From positions 1 to 64,000 of IMG/VR virus record IMGVR_UViG_3300049855_000348: a stretch of DNA of 64,000 nt. One strand, 5' to 3'. The notes beneath the pieces were generated by a model. It saw only the letters and a program-made list of their open reading frames with translations, searched no databases and was not told the DNA's origin. Made by a program: the position numbers and the translations under genes. Numbering within the stretch: the stretch's first letter is position 1; every line of letters begins with the position of its first letter. This document shows, piece by piece, positions 1,507-40,688 of this stretch.

Positions 1507-3110
1507 GGGTAGCTCAGCGGATTGTCTTTGAGGAGGCCGTTCTTATCGCATGGGCCACACCACGTGCGCAGTTGGAACTTGGCTCCCGCCTCGTTGTAAA
1601 CCATCAGGTTCGACCAACCGTCTTCACCGGCCTGACTATGCACGTGCTGGATGAACACTGGCAGCGATGGATCGCAAGTCTCCATACCCAGTGGTTCGAG
1701 GCAGAAGAGGAAGCGAGCGCAGCATGGGCCACCGATCACGTTATTGATGGCGTAGCTGTTGAGGTCGGTGTACTTGGTGACGTTGGCGTAGACATCCGGA
1801 TTCGTCGGATCAGCCAGACGAGAGTGGAGATCTTGACCGAGCTTCTGCCACTCGCTGAGCGTCATGTACTCTGGCATTCCAAATGGACCACTGATCCAGT
1901 GGACAACCGGCTGTGAAGCGAGTTGATAGAAGACGTTGTAGTCAGAGTAGACGTGGTTGAGGTCGATCTGACCGACGATGGTGATCGGTACTTCATAGTT
2001 CTCGACGACAACGGGAACCACCGCTGGAATCGTCACGAGAGCGCCGGCAGCGACCATCGACGAAGGGTTGAGGAACACCAGACGCTCAAGTGCGATGTCG
2101 GCGAGTTCCTTTTTCGAGTTGGCGAAACGGAACAGTGAGAAACGACCGAGCCATTCATAACCGCCTGCGGCAGCATTGGCGAAGGTCATCGGAGTTTCAG
2201 TGTTGAGACCGGAGTTGATGTTGGCGAGATCGGTCGTGGCCAGGACAGAATCGAAGTAGACCTTCAAACCGTCAGCAGCCAGAACGATTCCGATGTGATG
2301 CCAGCCGAGATCACCAAGTGCTGGAACCAGGGTGTCTGTTACGAGAGCCCCGTTGACGACACGAAGCGTGAGTGGACCGAAACTGTCTTGGCTGATCAGT
2401 ACCTGAAATTTCTGTGGGCTGGTCAGATCAATCGACGAAATCAACGCAGAGAAACCGGAACCAGGGTTGGCTGCATGTTTGATCCAACCAGTGATGGAGA
2501 ACGAGTCCTCCATGCGTACCTGTGGGAAGTTGATCTTGGTCGCAATTGTGATCTTGCCGCATGGCAGACCGTTGAGTCCAGCCTCTTCGGTAACTGCTCC
2601 CAGGATGATCACGCCATCGTTGTTGGCGGGGGTCAGGTCATGAACGTAGGAGCCATCAACTTCGCCGAGAGTAACGATGTCTTCATCGATCGCCCAGGTA
2701 GCACTTGGTTCGGGCTGGGCGGGGTCACTTTGGGTACGACCGCAGTACAGGTAGATCAGGGTGTCTGCTACGCTGCTGATGACTGGGATCTTCACCCATA
2801 CCATCAGGTGACCGGTGACCGGATCGTAGACTTGGACCTTGCAGGGGATGTGGTCGATCTGATTGGAGTCGGTGAAGGCGATATCACTGCCATCACTGTT
2901 GACGACGTTGCCGCCATTGGCGATCGTCCGTAGACCGGCGTCGGTGATATCCACCAAGATGACGTAGTTGGTGCGATCAACTAAGAAATTCACCGAATCG
3001 ATGGTGATCGGCATACGGTGGGTGTAGCCACCGAGCAGATACCCTGCGGGGTTCGAGATCGTCTTCCTGTGGGGGAGGAAGGCGTGGTTCTTGATCGTTA
3101 CGTCGGGCAC
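1503..3110 (-). CDS. DUF2341 plus LamG/concanavalin-A-like protein (tail or adhesin-like)
   Basis: N-terminal SDIAFTD...WVKIP...IYLYCG (DUF2341). FSITGWIK...WHHIGIV...VYFD (LamG). Late TAGATA motif upstream. Confidence 0.75.
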   Translation of the reverse strand: MPDVTIKNHAFLPHRKTISNPAGYLLGGYTHRMPITIDSVNFLVDRTNYVILVDITDAGLRTIANGGNVVNSDGSDIAFTDSNQIDHIPCKVQVYDPVTGHLMVWVKIPVISSVADTLIYLYCGRTQSDPAQPEPSATWAIDEDIVTLGEVDGSYVHDLTPANNDGVIILGAVTEEAGLNGLPCGKITIATKINFPQVRMEDSFSITGWIKHAANPGSGFSALISSIDLTSPQKFQVLISQDSFGPLTLRVVNGALVTDTLVPALGDLGWHHIGIVLAADGLKVYFDSVLATTDLANINSGLNTETPMTFANAAAGGYEWLGRFSLFRFANSKKELADIALERLVFLNPSSMVAAGALVTIPAVVPVVVENYEVPITIVGQIDLNHVYSDYNVFYQLASQPVVHWISGPFGMPEYMTLSEWQKLGQDLHSRLADPTNPDVYANVTKYTDLNSYAINNVIGGPCCARFLFCLEPLGMETCDPSLPVFIQHVHSQAGEDGWSNLMVYNEAGAKFQLRTWCGPCDKNGLLKDNPLSYP

Positions 3111-18490: not shown

Positions 18491-18565
18491 CGTCGAGTAT
18501 TTCAGCGGAAGAATATCTGCATGACATGCAGAAGGTCGGTGGTTCGATCCCACCCTCGACGACCA
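18491..18565 (+). tRNA. tRNA-Val(GAC)
   Basis: Cloverleaf, loop ATGACAT, encoded CCA. Confidence 0.9.
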
Positions 18566-18570
18566 AACAA

Positions 18571-18648
18571 TGCGGAGTAACTGGAGATGGAACCAGCCCA
18601 GCCTCATAAGCTGAACAAACGTGTGTTCGAGTCACACCTCCGCAACCA
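18571..18648 (+). tRNA. tRNA-Met(CAT); Met versus Ile2 not resolvable
   Basis: Cloverleaf, loop CTCATAA, CCA. Confidence 0.88.
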
Positions 18649-18649
18649 T

Positions 18650-18839
18650 TTGCAAGGACCTCTCTGCCCACCATCTCGATCCTAAGAAGAAAGAAGACAA
18701 CATCGGTACGATGGTCAGAAGAAGAGTGGCTATCAAAACTTTGGAAATCGAACTGCAAAAGTGTCTCTGCGTGTGTGAGAACTGTCATCGCAAGATCCAT
18801 GCAGGTATCATCAAACCTTTTCTCAGTGCTGGATCATGA
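18650..18839 (+). pseudogene. Truncated HNH endonuclease remnant
   Basis: HHLDP.KK...KC.CVCENCHRKIH begins right after the tRNA CCA with no start context. Confidence 0.65.
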
Positions 18840-18886
18840 CCGAACGCCTGTGGTCATTCCCTGGCGGGCACTCGGATTCTTCACAT

Positions 18887-18963
18887 GGTGGTCGTAGCTC
18901 AATGGATAGAGCACTGGACTGTGGCTCCAGCGGCTGTGGGTTCGACTCCCATCGATCACACCA
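18887..18963 (+). tRNA. tRNA-His(GTG)
   Basis: Cloverleaf, loop CTGTGGC, G-1 present, A73. Confidence 0.92.
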
Positions 18964-18970
18964 GTTCATT

Positions 18971-19047
18971 GTGCGGAGTACGCGCCTGACCCAGGCAAGA
19001 GGGTTTGCTCTAACCTCCCAGAGAAGAACGGGAGGTTGCTTCGGCAT
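18971..19047 (+). ncRNA. Putative structured spacer RNA (three hairpins in a closing stem)
   Basis: GCCTG/CAGGC, AGAG/CTCT, AACCTCCC/GGGAGGTT. Confidence 0.4.
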
Positions 19048-19121
19048 GGCTTGGTCGCTCAACGGCAGGGCGCTGGTTTGAAAAACCAGAGACGAAGGTT
19101 CGACTCCTTCTCAAGCCACCA
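19048..19121 (+). tRNA. tRNA-Phe(GAA)
   Basis: Cloverleaf, loop TTGAAAA. Confidence 0.92.
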
Positions 19122-19133
19122 TCTCCTTCTCAC

Positions 19134-19211
19134 GGTCGGTTCACTGCATGGTGCAGTGTGCGCAAGGACAGTCCCCTAAGCACGGCGGTTCGATTCCCCG
19201 GCTGACCACCA
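19134..19211 (+). ncRNA. tRNA-like RNA with no canonical anticodon loop
   Basis: GGTCGGT/GCTGACC-A-CCA, TTCGATT loop, GC-GCAA-GG..CC-CCTAA-GC in place of the anticodon arm. Confidence 0.7.
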
Positions 19212-19221
19212 TTTTTTTCAT

Positions 19222-19294
19222 CGGCTGGAATAGGTGCGCGTAAGGCATCAGATCCCCTCAAGCGATGGAGGTTCGATTCCTCCCTGGCCGACCA
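19222..19294 (+). ncRNA. tRNA-like RNA lacking a D-arm
   Basis: CGGCTGG/CTGGCCG-A-CCA, perfect GGAGG-TTCGATT-CCTCC, module GC-GTAA-GG..CC-CCTCAA-GC. Confidence 0.7.
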
Positions 19295-19296
19295 AG

Positions 19297-19402
19297 TACG
19301 ACTTCTCGGGTTCCGCAAGGAACGATCGTCCTACTGGCTACAACGGTGAAAATCCGGTGGATGCCAGAGGTGGTGGGATGGCTCACCAAATAAACTGAGA
19401 CT
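19297..19402 (+). ncRNA. Structured RNA A (paralog of RNA B)
   Basis: ACGAC start, CTCGG/CTGAG closing stem, GCAA tetraloop, AATAAA before the closing strand. Confidence 0.55.
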
Positions 19403-19407
19403 CATAA

Positions 19408-19484
19408 GCACCGATCGGCTGGTGGAAAAGCTACCTCCCTTTCAAGGAGATTCTTCGCGGGTTCGACTCCCGTTCGGTGTACCA
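19408..19484 (+). tRNA. tRNA-Glu(TTC)
   Basis: Cloverleaf, loop CTTTCAA. Confidence 0.88.
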
Positions 19485-19590
19485 ACGACGGAGCACAGTG
19501 ATCGAAAGATCGACCGGCTAGGCAACTCGCAAGAGTGCTCGAAAGGGCGGAGTCTAGTGGGGTGTAAGCACCTCGAATAAACTGTGAGTT
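19485..19590 (+). ncRNA. Structured RNA B (paralog of RNA A)
   Basis: ACGAC start, CACAG/CTGTG closing stem, GAAA and GCAA tetraloops, AATAAA. Confidence 0.55.
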
Positions 19591-19592
19591 AT

Positions 19593-19666
19593 GGTCCTTT
19601 CTGTCAGTGGCAGGCAGCCTGATTCTCAGTCAGACAACGTCGGTTCGATTCCGACAAGGACTACCA
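19593..19666 (+). tRNA. tRNA-Glu(CTC)
   Basis: Cloverleaf, loop TTCTCAG. Confidence 0.88.
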
Positions 19667-19669
19667 GCA

Positions 19670-19767
19670 AGAGCGGGACACTGGTTCGAGGCCAGTCATC
19701 GCAAGATGTAGCTCAGGGTGAAAACGTAAGGCATCAAACCCCCAAGTAATCCGGAAGAGCACGCTCT
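19670..19767 (+). ncRNA. Permuted (T-AS-D order) tRNA mimic with inserted module
   Basis: AGAGCG/CGCTCT closing; CTGG-TTCGAGG-CCAG; CATC-GCAA-GATG; TA-GCTC...GAGC. Confidence 0.55.
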
Positions 19768-19771
19768 ATTT

Positions 19772-19849
19772 GTTCCTGAGGACTAACGGCTAGGTCACCT
19801 CCCTGTCACGGAGTCATTCAAGTGGGTTCAACTCCCATCAGGAACGCCA
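19772..19849 (+). tRNA. tRNA-Asp(GTC)
   Basis: Cloverleaf, loop CTGTCAC, G73. Confidence 0.9.
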
Positions 19850-19853
19850 ACAT

Positions 19854-19927
19854 CCACGCTTCGTCTAATGGCAGGGCACCGATCTGATACGTCGGATACC
19901 AAGGTTCGATTCCTTGAGCGTGGACCA
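19854..19927 (+). tRNA. tRNA-Ile(GAT)
   Basis: Cloverleaf, loop CTGATAC. Confidence 0.88.
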
Positions 19928-19941
19928 CTTCAGTTTCACAT

Positions 19942-20016
19942 TGTGGGATGGCCTATGTGGTAGGGCACCCGGTTGTTACCCGGACTATACTGGTTCGACT
20001 CCAGTTCCCACAGCCA
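19942..20016 (+). tRNA. tRNA-Asn(GTT)
   Basis: Cloverleaf, loop TTGTTAC. Confidence 0.92.
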
Positions 20017-20021
20017 CTTTT

Positions 20022-20097
20022 GGGGTCGTAGCTCAATTGGCAGAGCACCTGTTTTGCACGCAGGATGTTAGCGGTTCAAGTCCGCTCGATTCCACCA
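20022..20097 (+). tRNA. tRNA-Ala(TGC)
   Basis: Cloverleaf, G3:U70. Confidence 0.95.
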
Positions 20098-20167
20098 CGC
20101 GGGAGTAATCTGAGAAATCAGAGAGAATTACCAGCCTCACAGCCGGCAAGGAGTAGACTGTGGTTTT

Positions 20168-20243
20168 GGGGAGTTAGCTCATCTGGTAGAGCGCGAGCAT
20201 GGCATGTTCGAGGCGAGGAGTTCAAGTCTCCTACTCTCCACCA
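20168..20243 (+). tRNA. tRNA-Ala(GGC)
   Basis: Cloverleaf, G3:U70. Confidence 0.92.
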
Positions 20244-20256
20244 CTTTCAATCATAC

Positions 20257-20340
20257 GGGCGGCGATATCTCAGAAGCGTAAGGATGATCCCCCAAGTTAT
20301 GAGAAAATCCTATGGGGTGAAAGCCCTCAACTGTCCACCA
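20257..20340 (+). ncRNA. tRNA-like RNA with an Ala-type acceptor (G3:U70, A73, CCA) and a TGAAAGC T-loop
   Basis: GGGCGG/CTGTCC-A-CCA; TGGGG-TGAAAGC-CCTCA; module GC-GTAA-GG..CC-CCCAA-GT. Confidence 0.6.
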
Positions 20341-20342
20341 CT

Positions 20343-20432
20343 CGATCGGAACGTCAGTCGCAGCGTAAGGCTTTTATCAAATCCCCAAGCTGTGCAGTAA
20401 CGCAACTGCTGGTGAAAGACCAGCCTGATCAC
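20343..20432 (+). ncRNA. tRNA-like RNA with a TGAAAGA T-loop and no encoded CCA
   Basis: GATCGG/CTGATC; GCTGG-TGAAAGA-CCAGC; module GCAGC-GTAA-GG..CC-CCAA-GCTGT. Confidence 0.55.
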
Positions 20433-20440
20433 TCTTCAAA

Positions 20441-20523
20441 CGAAACCCTGGCGGTGAAAAACCGCTTCCTCGGCGCATCCCCTACGTTGGTCTACCTCTG
20501 AAGTTTATCGACCCAGGGCTTCG
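20441..20523 (+). ncRNA. Structured RNA with a T-loop-like first hairpin
   Basis: CGAAACCCTGG/CCAGGGCTTCG closing; GCGG-TGAAAAA-CCGC. Confidence 0.45.
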
Positions 20524-20602
20524 TGTTTCTGCTAGCTAGATTCATGGGTACCATCAGCGACATCGACGATCAACTCTACGTTCAGCACATCAAGTAACGC
20601 AT

Positions 20603-20677
20603 ACGTCGATAGCTCCAATGTAGAGCGACGGTTTCCAAAACCGTTGGTTGGGGGTTCAAGTCCCTCTCGACGTGCCA
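20603..20677 (+). tRNA. tRNA-Trp(CCA)
   Basis: Cloverleaf, loop TTCCAAA. Confidence 0.92.
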
Positions 20678-20682
20678 TTCAC

Positions 20683-20757
20683 TGAGAGATAGTTCAACGG
20701 TAGAACGCTGCCCTCTGGAGGCAGATGCTAGAGGTTCGAGTCCTCTTCTCTCAACCA
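20683..20757 (+). tRNA. tRNA-Gln(CTG)
   Basis: Cloverleaf. Confidence 0.95.
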
Positions 20758-20760
20758 CAC

Positions 20761-20835
20761 TCAGGAATAGTTCAACGGTAGAACGCTGACCTTTGGAGTC
20801 AGTTGCTCCAGGTTCGAGTCCTGGTTCCTGAACCA
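20761..20835 (+). tRNA. tRNA-Gln(TTG)
   Basis: Cloverleaf. Confidence 0.95.
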
Positions 20836-20843
20836 TTTCACAT

Positions 20844-20922
20844 CTGCGTGTAGCTCAGCCTGGAACAGAGCACTTGCCTTGGGAGCAAGGGGTCGGAGGT
20901 TCAAATCCTCTCACGTAGACCA
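20844..20922 (+). tRNA. tRNA-Pro(TGG)
   Basis: Cloverleaf, loop CTTGGGA. Confidence 0.92.
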
Positions 20923-20927
20923 TTCAT

Positions 20928-21009
20928 GACGGTCGAGTCGAAAGTCGGGCGCTCCGGCATCAGATTGCAACCCTGATGACAGGTGGTTGAACTCCACCGA
21001 TCGTCTCCA
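20928..21009 (+). tRNA. tRNA-Cys(GCA) with an enlarged D-arm
   Basis: Loop TTGCAAC, U73, D region about 8 nt longer than normal. Confidence 0.8.
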
Positions 21010-21014
21010 TTCAC

Positions 21015-21090
21015 GTGTGTGTATCTCAGTGGCTAGAGAGCTTCCTTGCCAAGGAAGAGGTCGCAGGTTCAAGTCCTGTCACACACTCCA
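21015..21090 (+). tRNA. tRNA-Gly(GCC)
   Basis: Cloverleaf, U73. Confidence 0.95.
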
Positions 21091-21093
21091 ACA

Positions 21094-21160
21094 GGGGCAA
21101 ATGCGGGTTCAACTCCCGCTGCGACTTCGGTCGTATCGTCTAACCCGGTAGGACGGCCCC
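21094..21160 (+). ncRNA. Circularly permuted tRNA fold (YrlA/Y-RNA-like T-AS-D order); structure may extend to about 21280
   Basis: GGGGC-AAAT-GCGGG-TTCAACT-CCCGC-TGCGAC-TTCG-GTCGTA-TC-GTCT-AACCCGGT-AGGAC-G-GCCCC. Confidence 0.75.
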
Positions 21161-21282
21161 ACCCCGTGCGGATTGGATACCCGCACGGAATCCGAAGTCC
21201 TCAGGTTCAAGCCAAGGCAACCGCTCGCCGAGCGGAATACAAAATGCGGCTAGAGCAGGGGAGCACGAACGTGGCCCCGTTT

Positions 21283-21356
21283 GCCGATGTAGGTCAATGG
21301 TAGATCTGCTGCCTTCCAAGCAGAGGACGCGGGTTCGATTCCCGCCATCGGCTCCA
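21283..21356 (+). tRNA. tRNA-Gly(TCC)
   Basis: Cloverleaf, U73. Confidence 0.92.
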
Positions 21357-21360
21357 TCAT

Positions 21361-21436
21361 GTGTGCCTAGCTCAATGGATAGAGCATCTGACTACGGATC
21401 AGAAGGTTGAAGGTTCGAGTCCTTCGGTACACGCCA
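21361..21436 (+). tRNA. tRNA-Arg(ACG)
   Basis: Cloverleaf. Confidence 0.95.
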
Positions 21437-21469
21437 TTGCATAGCGATCTTTTTGGCTAGCATGTAACC

Positions 21470-21997
21470 ATGTCACTCAAAGATGCCCTCTTTCACTTTC
21501 GTGATCTTGGTTACTACGTTGATGATCAAGGAAATGTATTCAACCCAAGAGGAAAGATTCTTCGGTGTTCAACAAACAAAGATGGTTACAAAAGAATTAC
21601 CACAAGAATGAGAAATCATCCAGTTCATGGGGATTGGTGCCCTAAGGTTGAGGTTCACCGTCTTGCCGGTTATCAGAAGTTCGGAGACAAAATCTTCACC
21701 GAAGGACTTGAGATCTGTCACGATGATGGCGATAAGCGAAACAACGCCAAAGACAATCTGCGACTCGATACGCACAAAAGTAATATGATGGATGTTCCTC
21801 AAGAGGTAAGGATCAATAGAGCAAGACGTGCTGGTAGAGAACATGCCAAGCTAACAGATGAGCAGGTTGCTCACATTCGTTCATCTGGCATGACTCTGAA
21901 ACAGATCATGCAAACATACGGTATCAGTAAGTCTGGTGCCTCCTACGTCAGATCAGGAAAGACTTACGCCAGCCCGTGTATCCCCTCGCTTTCCTAA
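21470..21997 (+). mobile_element. HNH homing endonuclease inserted in the tRNA array
   Basis: VHRL...ICHDDGDKRNN..DNL, C-terminal HTH-like segment; AT-richer than its flanks. Confidence 0.85.
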
Positions 21998-22051
21998 AGC
22001 GGTGAAAGGGTAACTGGACACATGCAGGTTCAAATCCTGCCTCGGGTACCA
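21972..22051 (+). tRNA. Non-canonical rewired tRNA-Arg(CCT)-like, 80 nt
   Basis: Acceptor stem, T-arm and CCA; anticodon arm TCGCT-TTCCTAA-AGCGG nested inside CCC/GGG; AACTGG lies 3' of it. Confidence 0.7.
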
Positions 22052-22054
22052 CAT

Positions 22055-22132
22055 CGGGGTCCTAGTACGGGAGTGTCTGCATACCATTCGGTCACTACAG
22101 CCTCGGCGGTTCAATCCCGCCAACCTCGACCA
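22055..22132 (+). ncRNA. tRNA-like RNA lacking a D-arm (G3:U70, A73, CCA)
   Basis: CGGGGT/ACCTCG; GGCGG-TTCAATC-CCGCC; single long bulged arm ending in loop TCTGCATAC. Confidence 0.6.
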
Positions 22133-22135
22133 CAT

Positions 22136-22211
22136 GCGATCGTATTTCAATTGGAAGAACACCACCCTCCGAAGGTGGAAGGTGCAGGTTCGAGTCCTGC
22201 CGATCGCGCCA
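22136..22211 (+). tRNA. tRNA-Arg(CCG)
   Basis: Cloverleaf. Confidence 0.92.
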
Positions 22212-22214
22212 TCT

Positions 22215-22290
22215 GGTGACGTAGCTCAATGGACAGAGCTTCCAGCTTCTACCTGGATGGTTGGAGGTTCGAGTCCTCCCGTCATCGCCA
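22215..22290 (+). tRNA. tRNA-Arg(TCT)
   Basis: Cloverleaf. Confidence 0.95.
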
Positions 22291-22294
22291 TCAT

Positions 22295-22369
22295 GCTGCC
22301 ATAGCCGAGTGGTAAGGCACTTCATTCGTAACGAAGAGACCGGGTGTTCGATTCACCCTGGCAGCACCA
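22295..22369 (+). tRNA. tRNA-Thr(CGT)
   Basis: Cloverleaf. Confidence 0.9.
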
Positions 22370-22373
22370 TCAC

Positions 22374-22449
22374 GCCCCCATAGCTCAGTTGGTAGAGCAA
22401 CAGTTTTGTAAACTGTAGGTCGTCGGTTCGATCCCGACTGGTGGCTCCA
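22374..22449 (+). tRNA. tRNA-Thr(TGT)
   Basis: Cloverleaf. Confidence 0.93.
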
Positions 22450-22456
22450 TTTTCAC

Positions 22457-22530
22457 GCTGCTATAGTTCAGTGGTAAAACACGTCCTTGGTAAGGACGAG
22501 CCCCAGGTTCAATTCCTGGTAGCAGCACCA
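22457..22530 (+). tRNA. tRNA-Thr(GGT)
   Basis: Cloverleaf. Confidence 0.93.
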
Positions 22531-22535
22531 TTCAT

Positions 22536-22611
22536 CCATCAGTAGCGTAATTGGCAGCGCAGCGGGTTTTTACCCCGTGGGTTGTGAGTTCGACTCTCAC
22601 CTGATGGACCA
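22536..22611 (+). tRNA. tRNA-Lys(TTT)
   Basis: Cloverleaf. Confidence 0.92.
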
Positions 22612-22617
22612 TCGCAT

Positions 22618-22693
22618 GCATCCATAGCTCAACTGGCAGAGCACTCGGTTCTTACCCAAGGGGTTGGAGGTTCAAATCCTCCTGGATGCACCA
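22618..22693 (+). tRNA. tRNA-Lys(CTT)
   Basis: Cloverleaf. Confidence 0.92.
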
Positions 22694-22707
22694 TCATTAC
22701 ATAAGTC

Positions 22708-22941
22708 ATGCCAGCATGGAAATGGATGATCCTGAAGTTCTGTACCAGAGCGCATTTCATGCGGCTCATAGCAACCTTGATCATCCTCATCGCAGGCTTT
22801 CAATCTCTCTACTACCAGAAGATTGAAGACACGTGGTTGATCCTGGTTGGTGCAGTGATGAACCACTACTTCAACCACAAAGAAGCTGCGAACGTCACGG
22901 AAGAAGACAAGAATCCGGACGACGAATGCAAGGTCGGTTAG
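22708..22941 (+). CDS. Small two-TM membrane protein embedded in the tRNA array
   Basis: Two hydrophobic segments and an acidic tail; the stop codon lies inside tRNA-Val. Confidence 0.55.
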   Translation: MPAWKWMILKFCTRAHFMRLIATLIILIAGFQSLYYQKIEDTWLILVGAVMNHYFNHKEAANVTEEDKNPDDECKVG

Positions 22942-23006
22942 TTCAGCGGTAGAACGCTTCTCTTACACGGAAGATGTCGGGGGTTCGATCCCCTCACCGA
23001 CTACCA
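22932..23006 (+). tRNA. tRNA-Val(TAC)
   Basis: Cloverleaf. Confidence 0.93.
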
Positions 23007-23011
23007 CTTGC

Positions 23012-23091
23012 CGGTCTGTATCGGCTCGGTCTTATAAGCCGTCGAAACCGTAATTGGTTACATGAGGGTTCGACTCCCTCCAGACCGACCA
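23012..23091 (+). tRNA. Non-canonical rewired tRNA-Ile(TAT)-like, 80 nt
   Basis: Same segment lengths as 21972-22051; loop CTTATAA; CGG/CCG covaries with CCC/GGG. Confidence 0.75.
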
Positions 23092-23126
23092 CAAGGCTTC
23101 CACGATTCCCCTCCAAGGAGAACGCC

Positions 23127-23678
23127 ATGGCACCCGGTGCCTGCATAGTGCTGAACAACTCGTATGCCTTCCTCTCGATCAACAACTGGTTCGAGGCGAT
23201 GCGTCTCGTCGTCCGTGGCCGCGCCGTGCCGCTGGCAAACTACGAGACCAAGATCCGGGCAGAGCGTGAAGAGTTCGACGCACCAGCAGTCGTGATGCTG
23301 AAGCACCACGTGAACCTGGGGCGGAGAAGGCAACCTTTCACCCTGCCATCACATCGCAACATCTGGGTCCGTGATGGTGGGCACTGCGCCTACTGCAATC
23401 ACCCGCTGACGCTGCGGACAGTGACCAAGGAACACGTGATGCCCAGGTCACGCGGTGGAGAAGACAGCCTCTTGAACGTCGTGTCCGCCTGTGGCGACTG
23501 CAACGCCAAGAAGTCGAACCGCACGCCGGCAGAAGCCGGCATGAAGTTCCGTGACGGCATCGAACTGCGTCACCTCAACGATGAGGAGAAGCTGACGGTG
23601 CTGCTCAAGACCTCCCAGAGCCACGAACGGAAGACGTGGCTGGGGTTCCTCAAGAAGCAGGGTCTGACGCTGTTCTGA
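23127..23678 (+). CDS. HNH endonuclease (McrA-like)
   Basis: VLNNSY, RNIWVRDGGHCAYC, T.EHV.PRSRGG, NVV.AC..CN.KK.NRTP; SD AAGGAG. Confidence 0.88.
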   Translation: MAPGACIVLNNSYAFLSINNWFEAMRLVVRGRAVPLANYETKIRAEREEFDAPAVVMLKHHVNLGRRRQPFTLPSHRNIWVRDGGHCAYCNHPLTLRTVTKEHVMPRSRGGEDSLLNVVSACGDCNAKKSNRTPAEAGMKFRDGIELRHLNDEEKLTVLLKTSQSHERKTWLGFLKKQGLTLF

Positions 23679-23896: not shown

Positions 23897-24578
23897 TCAC
23901 TCCATCAAGCCGTCCAGGTCCCCCTTCATCCAAGCACGCACCGTGATGGATCGCCCTGTGCGGTGGTCCCTCACGTTGTCGTTCTGCACCTGGATGGTGC
24001 GGATCTTGTCACCACGCTCGCCGGAGCCTATCTGCTGCCGGCGATCGTCGTTTTGATCGGTATGGTGTTGGGTAGCGATGCCCCCCGCCAGACGCTCCTG
24101 TAACAGGGCCATGGCAGCATGCTTGTTCGACAACTGGTGGCGCTCTTTGTCGGCACGGACAGTCATGCCCGTCGGACGATGGGTGATCTGCACACCCGAC
24201 TCAGTCTTGTTGCGGTGCTGACCACCTGGGCCAGATCCACGGACGGTGATGATATCCAGGTCGCGTTCATCCAGCACGAACTTCTGCTGCTGGCTTCCAT
24301 CGATCACCGCCACGGTGACCGTCGAGCTATGGACACGACCCTTGCGCTCAGTGGGTGGAACCCGCTGCCAACGATGGCCGCCTGCTTCTTGGCTGAAGGC
24401 TTCTTTGGCTCCCTTACCAGTAACGGTGAGCCGCAGAAAGCCGTGAGACTCTTGATCCACTACAACTTCAAAGACCCCTCCGCGCTCCCCATTTGCGATA
24501 GATGGTGAGGTGTTCGCGCACGAGCAATCGTGCGTCCTCGCCGCCTTCAGCGGCTCTGATTTCGAGGTGGATAGTCAT
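23897..24578 (-). CDS. Class I peptide chain release factor lacking domain 1 (about 226 aa), needing a +1 programmed frameshift at 24468-24473
   Basis: Frame 0: MTIHLEIRAAEGGEDA...RRGL-TGA. +1 frame: EVVVDQ...EAGGHRWQRVPPTERKGRVHSSTVTVAV...GSGPGGQHRNKTESGV..KIRT. Confidence 0.88.
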
Positions 24579-24619
24579 GACGGGCTTGTAGCAGGTGGGT
24601 GACTAGATTCAACGAGCAC

Positions 24620-40609: not shown

Positions 40610-40688
40610 TGGTACCCGTGACAGGAGTCGAACCTGCAATTTTACTACCACCTCAAGGTAGCGCGTCTGCCAATTTCGCCACACGGGC
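40610..40688 (-). tRNA. tRNA-Leu(GAG), short variable loop
   Basis: Cloverleaf, A73. Confidence 0.9.

Follow-up and report, generated by a model that had tools for sequence, protein, structure and literature searches.

A jumbo phage carries a shortened RF1-type release factor gene that is interrupted by an internal stop codon, and its full-length product would be made only if the ribosome slips one base forward at that stop. The same slip site is kept in about 90 related phage and bacterial genes, mostly from viral contigs of 50-460 kb, which shows that the break is a built-in control and not a sequencing error, although the occurrence of frameshifting itself is inferred from sequence alone. 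The window analysed is a stretch of 64,000 nucleotides, positions 1 to 64,000 of the 220-kb IMG/VR contig IMGVR_UViG_3300049855_000348. We consider the most likely reading, with a probability of roughly 0.6, to be a domain-1-less, RF3-independent RF1-type release factor whose yield rises when termination at the gate codon is slow.

The gene lies on the minus strand. The first open reading frame, ORF1 (24578-24471), runs from ATG (24578-24576) for 36 sense codons, contains IHLEIRAAEGGEDA and ends with RRGL. Its last codons are CGG (24482-24480), AGG (24479-24477), GGT (24476-24474) and the Leu codon CTT (24473-24471), followed by the stop TGA (24470-24468) and A at the +4 position (24467). A Shine-Dalgarno (SD)-like GGAGG (24481-24477), the proposed frameshift stimulator, therefore lies exactly 3 nt upstream of CTT, and the shift site CTT TGA A occupies 24473-24467. 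The +1 frame, ORF2 (24469-23900), begins with GAA at 24469-24467, is open for 190 sense codons to the stop TGA at 23899-23897, and contains PPT (24358-24350) and the peptidyl-tRNA hydrolysis motif GGQ (24226-24218), the latter invariant in the family alignment. The predicted junction is RRGL-EVVV. The observation made in the initial annotation, which was derived from the sequence alone, is thus confirmed in every detail.

To determine how the two pieces relate to known release factors, they were compared separately with curated profiles; a protein read through the stop was not submitted to any search. The two pieces match RF1 collinearly: on profile NF001859, ORF1 covers positions 106-138 of 347 and ORF2 covers positions 158-335, so that the site falls between positions 138 and 158, in domain 2. 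ORF1 encodes the first strand and helix alpha5 of domain 2, and ORF2 encodes the rest of domain 2, domain 3 (GGQ) and domain 4. RF1 scored 177 bits, RF2 119 bits, PrfH (TIGR03072) 82 bits (81.7 against a cut-off of 166.65) and ArfB 36 bits over residues 61-96 only. Pfam gave PCRF (PF03462) on both pieces and RF-1 (PF00472, 93 bits) on ORF2, and a search of PDB sequences with ORF2 returned RF1 with E = 2e-36. The score is below the NCBIfam RF1 cut-offs of 400 and 423 bits, so the gene is not a full-length RF1 equivalog. Nothing matches RF1 profile positions 1-105, which correspond to domain 1, and the next gene upstream is on the other strand.

Given that a single-base frame break in a metagenomic contig is the commonest artefact, we next tested whether the break is conserved. 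A protein search with ORF2 returned thousands of hits, and nearly all of the top 120 are gene calls of 170-225 residues whose N-termini are out-of-frame readings ending in G-G-V-F-D or similar, which is the +1-frame reading of GGNGG..CTTTGAC. We retrieved DNA for 80 viral loci and 25 close genomic loci, together with two published huge-phage genomes, and located the frame junction in each. Among 89 non-identical frameshift-type loci, the codon before the stop is CTT in 88 and TTT in 1; the stop is TGA in 72, TAG in 14 and TAA in 3; and the +4 base is C in 63, G in 20, A in 5 and T in 1. In 85 loci the stop lies exactly 32 codons after the start of the (L/I/V)-E-I-R motif, and 4 have the cassette at a second site. 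Positions -12 to -7 read CGGAGG in 62-80 of the 89 loci, and Arg at codon -3 is AGG in 51 loci, AGA in 3 and CGN in none, whereas AGG is 7.6% of Arg codons and CTT 17% of Leu codons in the window. This is selection on nucleotides and not only on the protein. However, some relatives lack the GGAGG element altogether, for example CGC CAC TGT CTT TGA, and the A at +4 in the window is rare in the family (5 of 72 TGA gates). Contiguous homologues had been named beforehand in the initial annotation as the finding that would reduce the break to an error or a pseudogene; the comparison came out the other way, since 89 homologues keep the shift site and the few contiguous ones are nested among them. 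A nucleotide search of GenBank phages with the locus found nothing, and a protein search of them found only hits of 43% identity or less, mostly canonical release factors in unannotated records, but one curated huge-phage genome of 485 kb (L161) does carry the cassette.

We then asked whether the two frames encode one protein. None of 85 loci has ATG, GTG or TTG in the first three +1-frame codons, and no later position is conserved as a start. Naturally contiguous homologues exist, namely P0077 (227 residues) and L044/L045 (226 residues). On a maximum-likelihood tree, L044 is sister to a frameshift-type gene with 100/97 support, deep inside the frameshift clade, so contiguity there is a secondary loss. 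An AlphaFold2 model of L044 (pLDDT 88), used for the fold in place of the interrupted gene, superposes over its whole length on ribosome-bound RF1, with TMq of 0.85 for RF1, 0.82 for RF2 and 0.63 for PrfH on a damaged ribosome. Among the window and its two closest relatives (88-90% protein identity), 90 of 131 variable ORF2 sites are third positions of the +1 frame, indicating that this frame is translated and under purifying selection.

The decoding residues were placed by phmmer alignment with T. thermophilus RF1, in which ORF1 residues 5-34 align with RF1 residues 109-138 and ORF2 residue n aligns with RF1 residue n+146. In this register, G12 and D15 of ORF1, within the codons for G12-G13-E14-D15 (24545-24534), correspond to Gly116 and Glu119 at the tip of helix alpha5, where U1 of the stop codon is read. 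In ORF2, Q35 corresponds to Gln181, P38-P39-T40 to the P-x-T 'anticodon' tripeptide at 184-186, H47 to His193, S48 to Thr194, and G82-G83-Q84 to GGQ at 228-230. These RF1 residues read the stop codon in RF1-ribosome structures, apart from GGQ, and they are all in register here, with Ser in place of Thr at the Thr194 equivalent. The stretch around the tripeptide is nearly invariant in the family. ORF2 alone would lack helix alpha5, so only the shifted product has a complete decoding site. Domain 1 is reported to be dispensable for codon recognition and peptide release but needed for RF3 interplay, and truncated RF1 works in vivo (PMC1586002), so its loss is compatible with activity. The specificity for UAA and UAG is inferred, as peptide release was not assayed on any stop codon.

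The gate itself varies across the family. The tree shows the frameshift at the position found in the window (site A) throughout a clade of 81 sequences, which spans about 45-55% protein identity; TAG gates need at least 5 independent origins on well-supported branches, and TAA gates need 3. A second clade holds betaproteobacterial contigs, including a Thiobacillus denitrificans isolate scaffold, in which the cassette (GGGGG-like, 3 nt, CTT TGA C) lies 42-44 codons after the motif start, about 10 codons further downstream (site B). Two sister viral contigs, L059 and L072, have an in-frame stop, TAG in one and TGA in the other, exactly where the others have the shift; it replaces the Asp/Glu codon, so that the downstream reading and length are kept. 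L064 and L067 have an in-frame TGA at site B, and L096 has a similar TGA three codons later, in a different frame from ORF2. An alternative genetic code was considered for the in-frame-stop relatives, but a crude comparison of ORF lengths under three codes did not discriminate among them at these GC contents and leaves the point undecided, and no suppressor tRNA lies in their flanks. The gate stop showed no association with the tripeptide (PPT or PPN; Fisher p = 1.0), with GC content (p = 0.90) or with stop usage in flanking genes (p = 0.82), so neither self-regulation nor codon-usage matching gained support. What persists through all these changes is a stop codon that must be bypassed early in the gene. 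The full set of 357 IMG/VR loci and metagenome contigs was not surveyed in full length, and ancestral-state reconstruction of gate type on a rooted tree including bacterial RF1 was not run.

Taken together, the locus is best explained as encoding one protein of about 226 residues, an RF1-type class-I release factor made of domains 2-4 only, with no domain 1 and hence no RF3 docking part, whose synthesis needs a +1 ribosomal frameshift after codon 36. The mechanism proposed is by analogy with prfB, for which slow termination at the stop, SD:anti-SD pairing and E-site tRNA loss are followed by slippage of the P-site tRNA-Leu from CUU to UUU (PMC12421855). In this view, the ribosome arrives with peptidyl-tRNA-Leu on CUU in the P site and UGA in the A site, termination at UGA-A is slow, the GGAGG element pairs with the 16S rRNA tail, and tRNA-Leu re-pairs on UUU so that GAA is read next. 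Termination at the gate would give a 36-residue stub, and the yield of factor would rise as termination at the gate slows. In this phage the gate is UGA, which is read by host RF2 and, judging by its decoding residues, not by the product itself. The loop would therefore be open here, a cross-sensing of RF2 capacity rather than self-regulation, and could be closed only in the TAG and TAA relatives. The product would add UAA/UAG termination capacity for a phage that also brings more than 30 tRNAs and ends about 44% of its genes in TAA or TAG (TGA 42, TAA 19 and TAG 14 in the window); pooled flanks of relatives give TGA 49%, TAG 25% and TAA 26%. A real demand for RF1-type termination therefore exists, and it is speculation that a UGA gate might report RF2 saturation as phage mRNAs accumulate. 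Our data establish the anatomy of the locus, the family-wide nucleotide-level conservation of the cassette, the collinearity with RF1, the fold of a contiguous homologue (as modelled) and purifying selection in the +1 frame, whereas the occurrence and efficiency of shifting, the codon specificity and what the gate senses are inferences; no expression data exist, and a shifted product was not looked for. The adaptive logic of a UGA gate is unclear, because an RF1-type product does not relieve an RF2 shortage directly, and the variation of the gate stop suggests that its identity may only tune efficiency and not name a particular host factor.

Several features of the site were examined with respect to this mechanism. 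The shift region folds no better than shuffled sequences (z = -0.48), and ORF1 gave z = -1.45; the absence of notable RNA structure is as for a prfB-type site. ORF1 start codons in the family carry SD-like sequences in 56 of 81 loci, indicating that SD pairing is in use in these systems, but no SD precedes the ATG of ORF1 in the window. A strict consensus scan found no minus-strand promoter upstream of ORF1. A tentative promoter can be proposed from weaker matches at 24612-24585 on the minus strand, consisting of TTGAAT (24612-24607), 16 nt, and TACAAG (24590-24585), followed by 6 nt to the ATG, which would give a leaderless or nearly leaderless mRNA; both hexamers are conserved in two relatives, L166 and L167, while the spacer varies. 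The phage also encodes tRNA-Leu(GAG) (40688-40610, minus strand), the isoacceptor expected to read CUU and to slip onto UUU, although its involvement is not proven and its link to the shift site is inferred.

The interpretation given in the initial annotation is partly supported. Its core, a phage gene for an RF1-type factor lacking domain 1 and split by a prfB-style SD-N3-CUU-UGA shift site, holds. Its proposal that the factor is made only when host RF2 termination at UGA is weak is plausible as a stress-sensing scheme but is an untested inference: about 30-50% shifting is reported for the E. coli prfB site (figures quoted in a preprint), and the gate stop is TAG or TAA in 17 of 89 loci, so the logic cannot be RF2 sensing everywhere. 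Its alternative of a rescue factor is less likely than a codon-specific RF1 reading. Nothing here links the gene to the 'tRNA attenuators' beside which it was placed as a second translation-stress sensor; the only link is physical, in that these genes often sit in tRNA arrays.

Of the alternative readings, a fixed-ratio attenuator survives best, although we regard it as only a tentative possibility. In this case the shift would happen at a roughly constant rate, nothing would be sensed, and the dose of a potentially harmful release factor would simply be kept low; the 36-residue peptide may also have its own role. In favor of it, any of the three stops is tolerated at the gate without tracking the tripeptide, GC content or flanking stop usage, and release-factor overexpression reduces fitness in B. 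subtilis (PMC12421855). In addition, ORF1 shows unusually low synonymous change among the window's closest relatives, with 2 of 36 third positions variable against 90 of 190 in ORF2 (p = 5e-7). However, a weak promoter or weak RBS would set a fixed dose more cheaply, and any stop-dependent shift is by its nature sensitive to release-factor activity. The retention of a stop at the gate even after the frameshift was lost, as in L059 and L072, which form a nested clade, points to the stop itself, meaning competition with termination, as the selected feature.

A codon-independent ribosome-rescue factor of the PrfH or ArfB type, which would free ribosomes stalled or damaged during infection or by host defence, seems unlikely. 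The product lacks domain 1, as PrfH does (PMC6514570, PMC1586002), gives a PrfH profile hit and a structural match to PrfH, and some homologues sit near other rescue genes, with PTH2 near L163 and a tmRNA near L042. On the other hand, it scores far better against RF1 than against PrfH or ArfB; P-x-T, the Gln181, His193 and Thr194 equivalents (the last as Ser in the window) and the alpha5 tip are retained in a stretch nearly invariant across the family; and no RtcB was found among the neighbours scanned, which are an HNH endonuclease and unknowns. Unlike ArfB, which has a GGQ domain and a basic C-terminal tail but no codon-recognition domain, it has domains 2 and 4.

True autoregulation, in which the family would read UGA as well as UAA and UAG and terminate at its own gate, is also doubtful. 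The family tripeptides are unusual, comprising PPT, PPN in about 20 of 89, and natural SPT or SPL hybrids of the RF2 and RF1 motifs in 5, and free switching of the gate among TGA, TAG and TAA is what an omnipotent factor would allow. Nevertheless, the decoding residues are RF1-like and not RF2-like, the RF1 profile outscores RF2 by 58 bits, and the tripeptide does not co-vary with the gate stop, although specificity cannot be read from sequence with certainty.

Two separate genes, with ORF2 starting at its own GTG (24460) and using GGAGG as its ribosome-binding site, are very improbable. This GTG lies at +1-frame codon 4, about 14-16 nt after GGAGG, and public gene callers annotate the two ORFs separately, but only 9% of the loci have a start-like codon at codon 4, the model does not explain why CTT is invariant before the stop, and the two pieces are parts of one domain and are fused in natural homologues. 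A sequencing or assembly error or a decaying pseudogene is refuted by the identical break in 89 independent, diverged loci from many samples, including isolate genomes and the curated L161 genome, and by purifying selection on ORF2.

The closest known system is the autoregulatory frameshift of prfB (RF2), which has the same geometry, with an SD-like G-rich hexamer, a 3-nt spacer, CUU, a stop that is mostly UGA and usually C at +4, needs no downstream RNA structure, and likewise governs a class-I release factor. Here, however, the gene is RF1-type; the site lies in domain 2, after helix alpha5 at codon 37, and not at about codon 26 in domain 1, so that it is not positionally homologous; and the product is not expected to read a UGA gate, so that the loop is open in most members. 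A 2025 survey of more than 12,000 genomes found no TAG gate among 8,164 prfB motifs and no programmed shift in prfA (PMC12421855); the absence of a shift in prfA is also stated in a reviewer remark in PMC1586002. For canonical prfA we rely on that survey, since the loci intended as our own control (L106-L160 from the genome scan) proved to be GGQ-only, ArfB-like genes and were unusable. Compared with canonical RF1, which gives the best profile, sequence and fold matches, the product has about 226 residues instead of about 355. PrfH, which pairs with RtcB, is a class-I homologue without domain 1 that keeps a domain-2-like module and GGQ, but it has an atypical SXY motif and not P-x-T (PMC1586002), and the two papers on it that we consulted (PMC6514570, PMC1586002) mention no programmed frameshifting. 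Studies of huge and stop-codon-recoded phages (Al-Shayeb 2020, PMC7162821; Borges 2021 preprint) report phage-borne RF1 or RF2 genes, often next to tRNA genes and proposed to shape termination during infection, without any frameshift or truncation, and the window uses the standard code.

To date, prfB has been the only known bacterial gene family using the CUU-stop +1 shift, and a 2024 paper states that every such entry in RECODE is prfB (PMC10885494). We found no description of the present family in the literature searched, which omits most subscription journals, so prior description elsewhere cannot be excluded. What differs from prfB is that the cassette sits at a non-homologous position in an RF1-type gene, is conserved in hundreds of mostly viral contigs and has a freely varying gate codon. 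This offers a natural experiment on what a stop-codon gate senses, a second, apparently convergent origin of the cassette, a minimal RF1 that should work without RF3, and a candidate mechanism by which tRNA-rich jumbo phages tune termination. A broader reading, which is tentative, is that phages and some Myxococcota and Betaproteobacteria carry a portable termination-capacity sensor, a minimal, RF3-independent RF1 whose synthesis is licensed by failure of the cell's release factors at a gate stop that has been re-tuned many times, switching between UGA, UAG and UAA, moving between two positions and converting from frameshift to in-frame stop. If true, this would imply that phages monitor and rebalance host termination, or counter a host response that limits release factors, and that the SD-CUU-stop cassette arose independently of prfB at least twice. 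Phage release factors of this type are at present mis-annotated, because public gene calls split the gene into a 37-residue ORF plus an ORF2 with a spurious N-terminus, or name the ORF2 call 'peptide chain release factor-like protein'.

Finally, the setting of the gene was examined. The window has phage baseplate, DNA polymerase and helicase genes, 33 tRNA genes with no suppressor among them, and HNH endonucleases in the tRNA array; a Pfam search of 20 further window ORFs gave almost nothing beyond HNH domains. In 30 of 60 related loci the gene sits among same-strand tRNA genes, whereas in the window it is convergent with the array. Cultured carriers of relatives include Thiobacillus denitrificans DSM 12475, Archangium gephyra SDU49, Pyxidicoccus fallax DSM 14698 and Novimethylophilus kurashikiensis La2-4. 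Some 'bacterial' hits are clearly phage-like, such as L095 with 26 tRNAs and L087 with 11, while the chromosomal copy of Archangium gephyra (L084), which has a TAG gate, has non-phage-looking neighbours.

The region upstream of ORF1, the first open reading frame of the split RF1-type gene, was examined for sequence elements. On the minus strand, positions 24585-24612 of the window read TTGAAT, 16 nt, TACAAG and then 6 nt to the ATG of ORF1, and both hexamers are conserved in the two closest relatives, L166 and L167, while the spacer varies. ORF1 has no Shine-Dalgarno sequence here, so the mRNA may be leaderless. In a comparison of the window with L166 and L167, the synonymous change in ORF1 (24471-24578) was set against that in ORF2, the downstream +1-frame reading frame. 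Synonymous change was almost absent across ORF1 (2 of 36 third positions), but common in ORF2 (90 of 190; p = 5e-7). Family-wide, however, the difference was mild, with 0.41 against 0.53 of the synonymous codons differing, and no stable RNA fold was found to explain it (z = -1.45).

The form of the gate also differed in several members of the family. Two sister viral contigs, L059 and L072 (467 and 183 kb), carry an in-frame stop (TAG and TGA, respectively; ~2970-3000 in each locus) at exactly the codon where the relatives frameshift, and the rest of the gene is intact, pointing to readthrough or another bypass. No suppressor tRNA lies within 3 kb. In a second clade (loci L091, L095, L099, and L101), the GGGGG-N3-CTT-TGA-C cassette is located 42-44 codons after the motif start, about 10 codons further downstream than site A, the position of the shift in the main clade. 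The relatives of this second clade, L064 and L067, have an in-frame GGC TGA at that same position, whereas L096 has one three codons later, in a different frame, and also has a further frame break. In addition, the low-GC relatives L075 and L092, one of which is binned as Bacteroidota, have two in-frame TGA codons in the gene, and it is possible that they come from TGA-recoded genomes.

Variation was likewise seen at the tripeptide position. Loci L031, L057, L058, L061, and L076 have natural S-P-T or S-P-L tripeptides, which are hybrids of the RF2 (S-P-F) and RF1 (P-x-T) motifs, and about 20 of 89 members have P-P-N. Codon specificity may differ within the family.

With respect to the tRNA genes, the phage encodes tRNA-Leu(GAG) at 40610-40688 (minus strand), the reader of CUU and the tRNA expected to slip at the shift site. 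The same isoacceptor sits in tRNA arrays beside the gene in loci L016, L029, L033, L053, and L095. Within the window, two HNH endonuclease genes on the plus strand (21470-21997 and 22974-23678) lie inside and at the end of the 25-gene tRNA array (18491-23006), and the second, as an ORF call, overlaps the last tRNA-Val by about 30 nt. Other translation-rescue genes lie near homologues: a PTH2 peptidyl-tRNA hydrolase gene (L163:11482-11871) is situated 3 kb downstream in a 199 kb contig, and a tmRNA gene (L042:2106-2464) is situated 0.5 kb upstream in another. Family members are also carried by cultured isolates (L084, L094, L095, and L099). Of these, the copy on the Archangium gephyra SDU49 chromosome (L084) has a TAG gate and non-phage-looking neighbours, a group 1 glycosyltransferase and a DUF1569 protein, so the gene may also live in cellular genomes.

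Finally, the conformation of the AlphaFold2 model of L044 (L044:2851-3528), a naturally contiguous homologue, was considered. The model comes out in the open, ribosome-bound RF1 conformation (TMq 0.85), and its match to the closed crystal forms of free RF1 and RF2 is much weaker (about 0.54).
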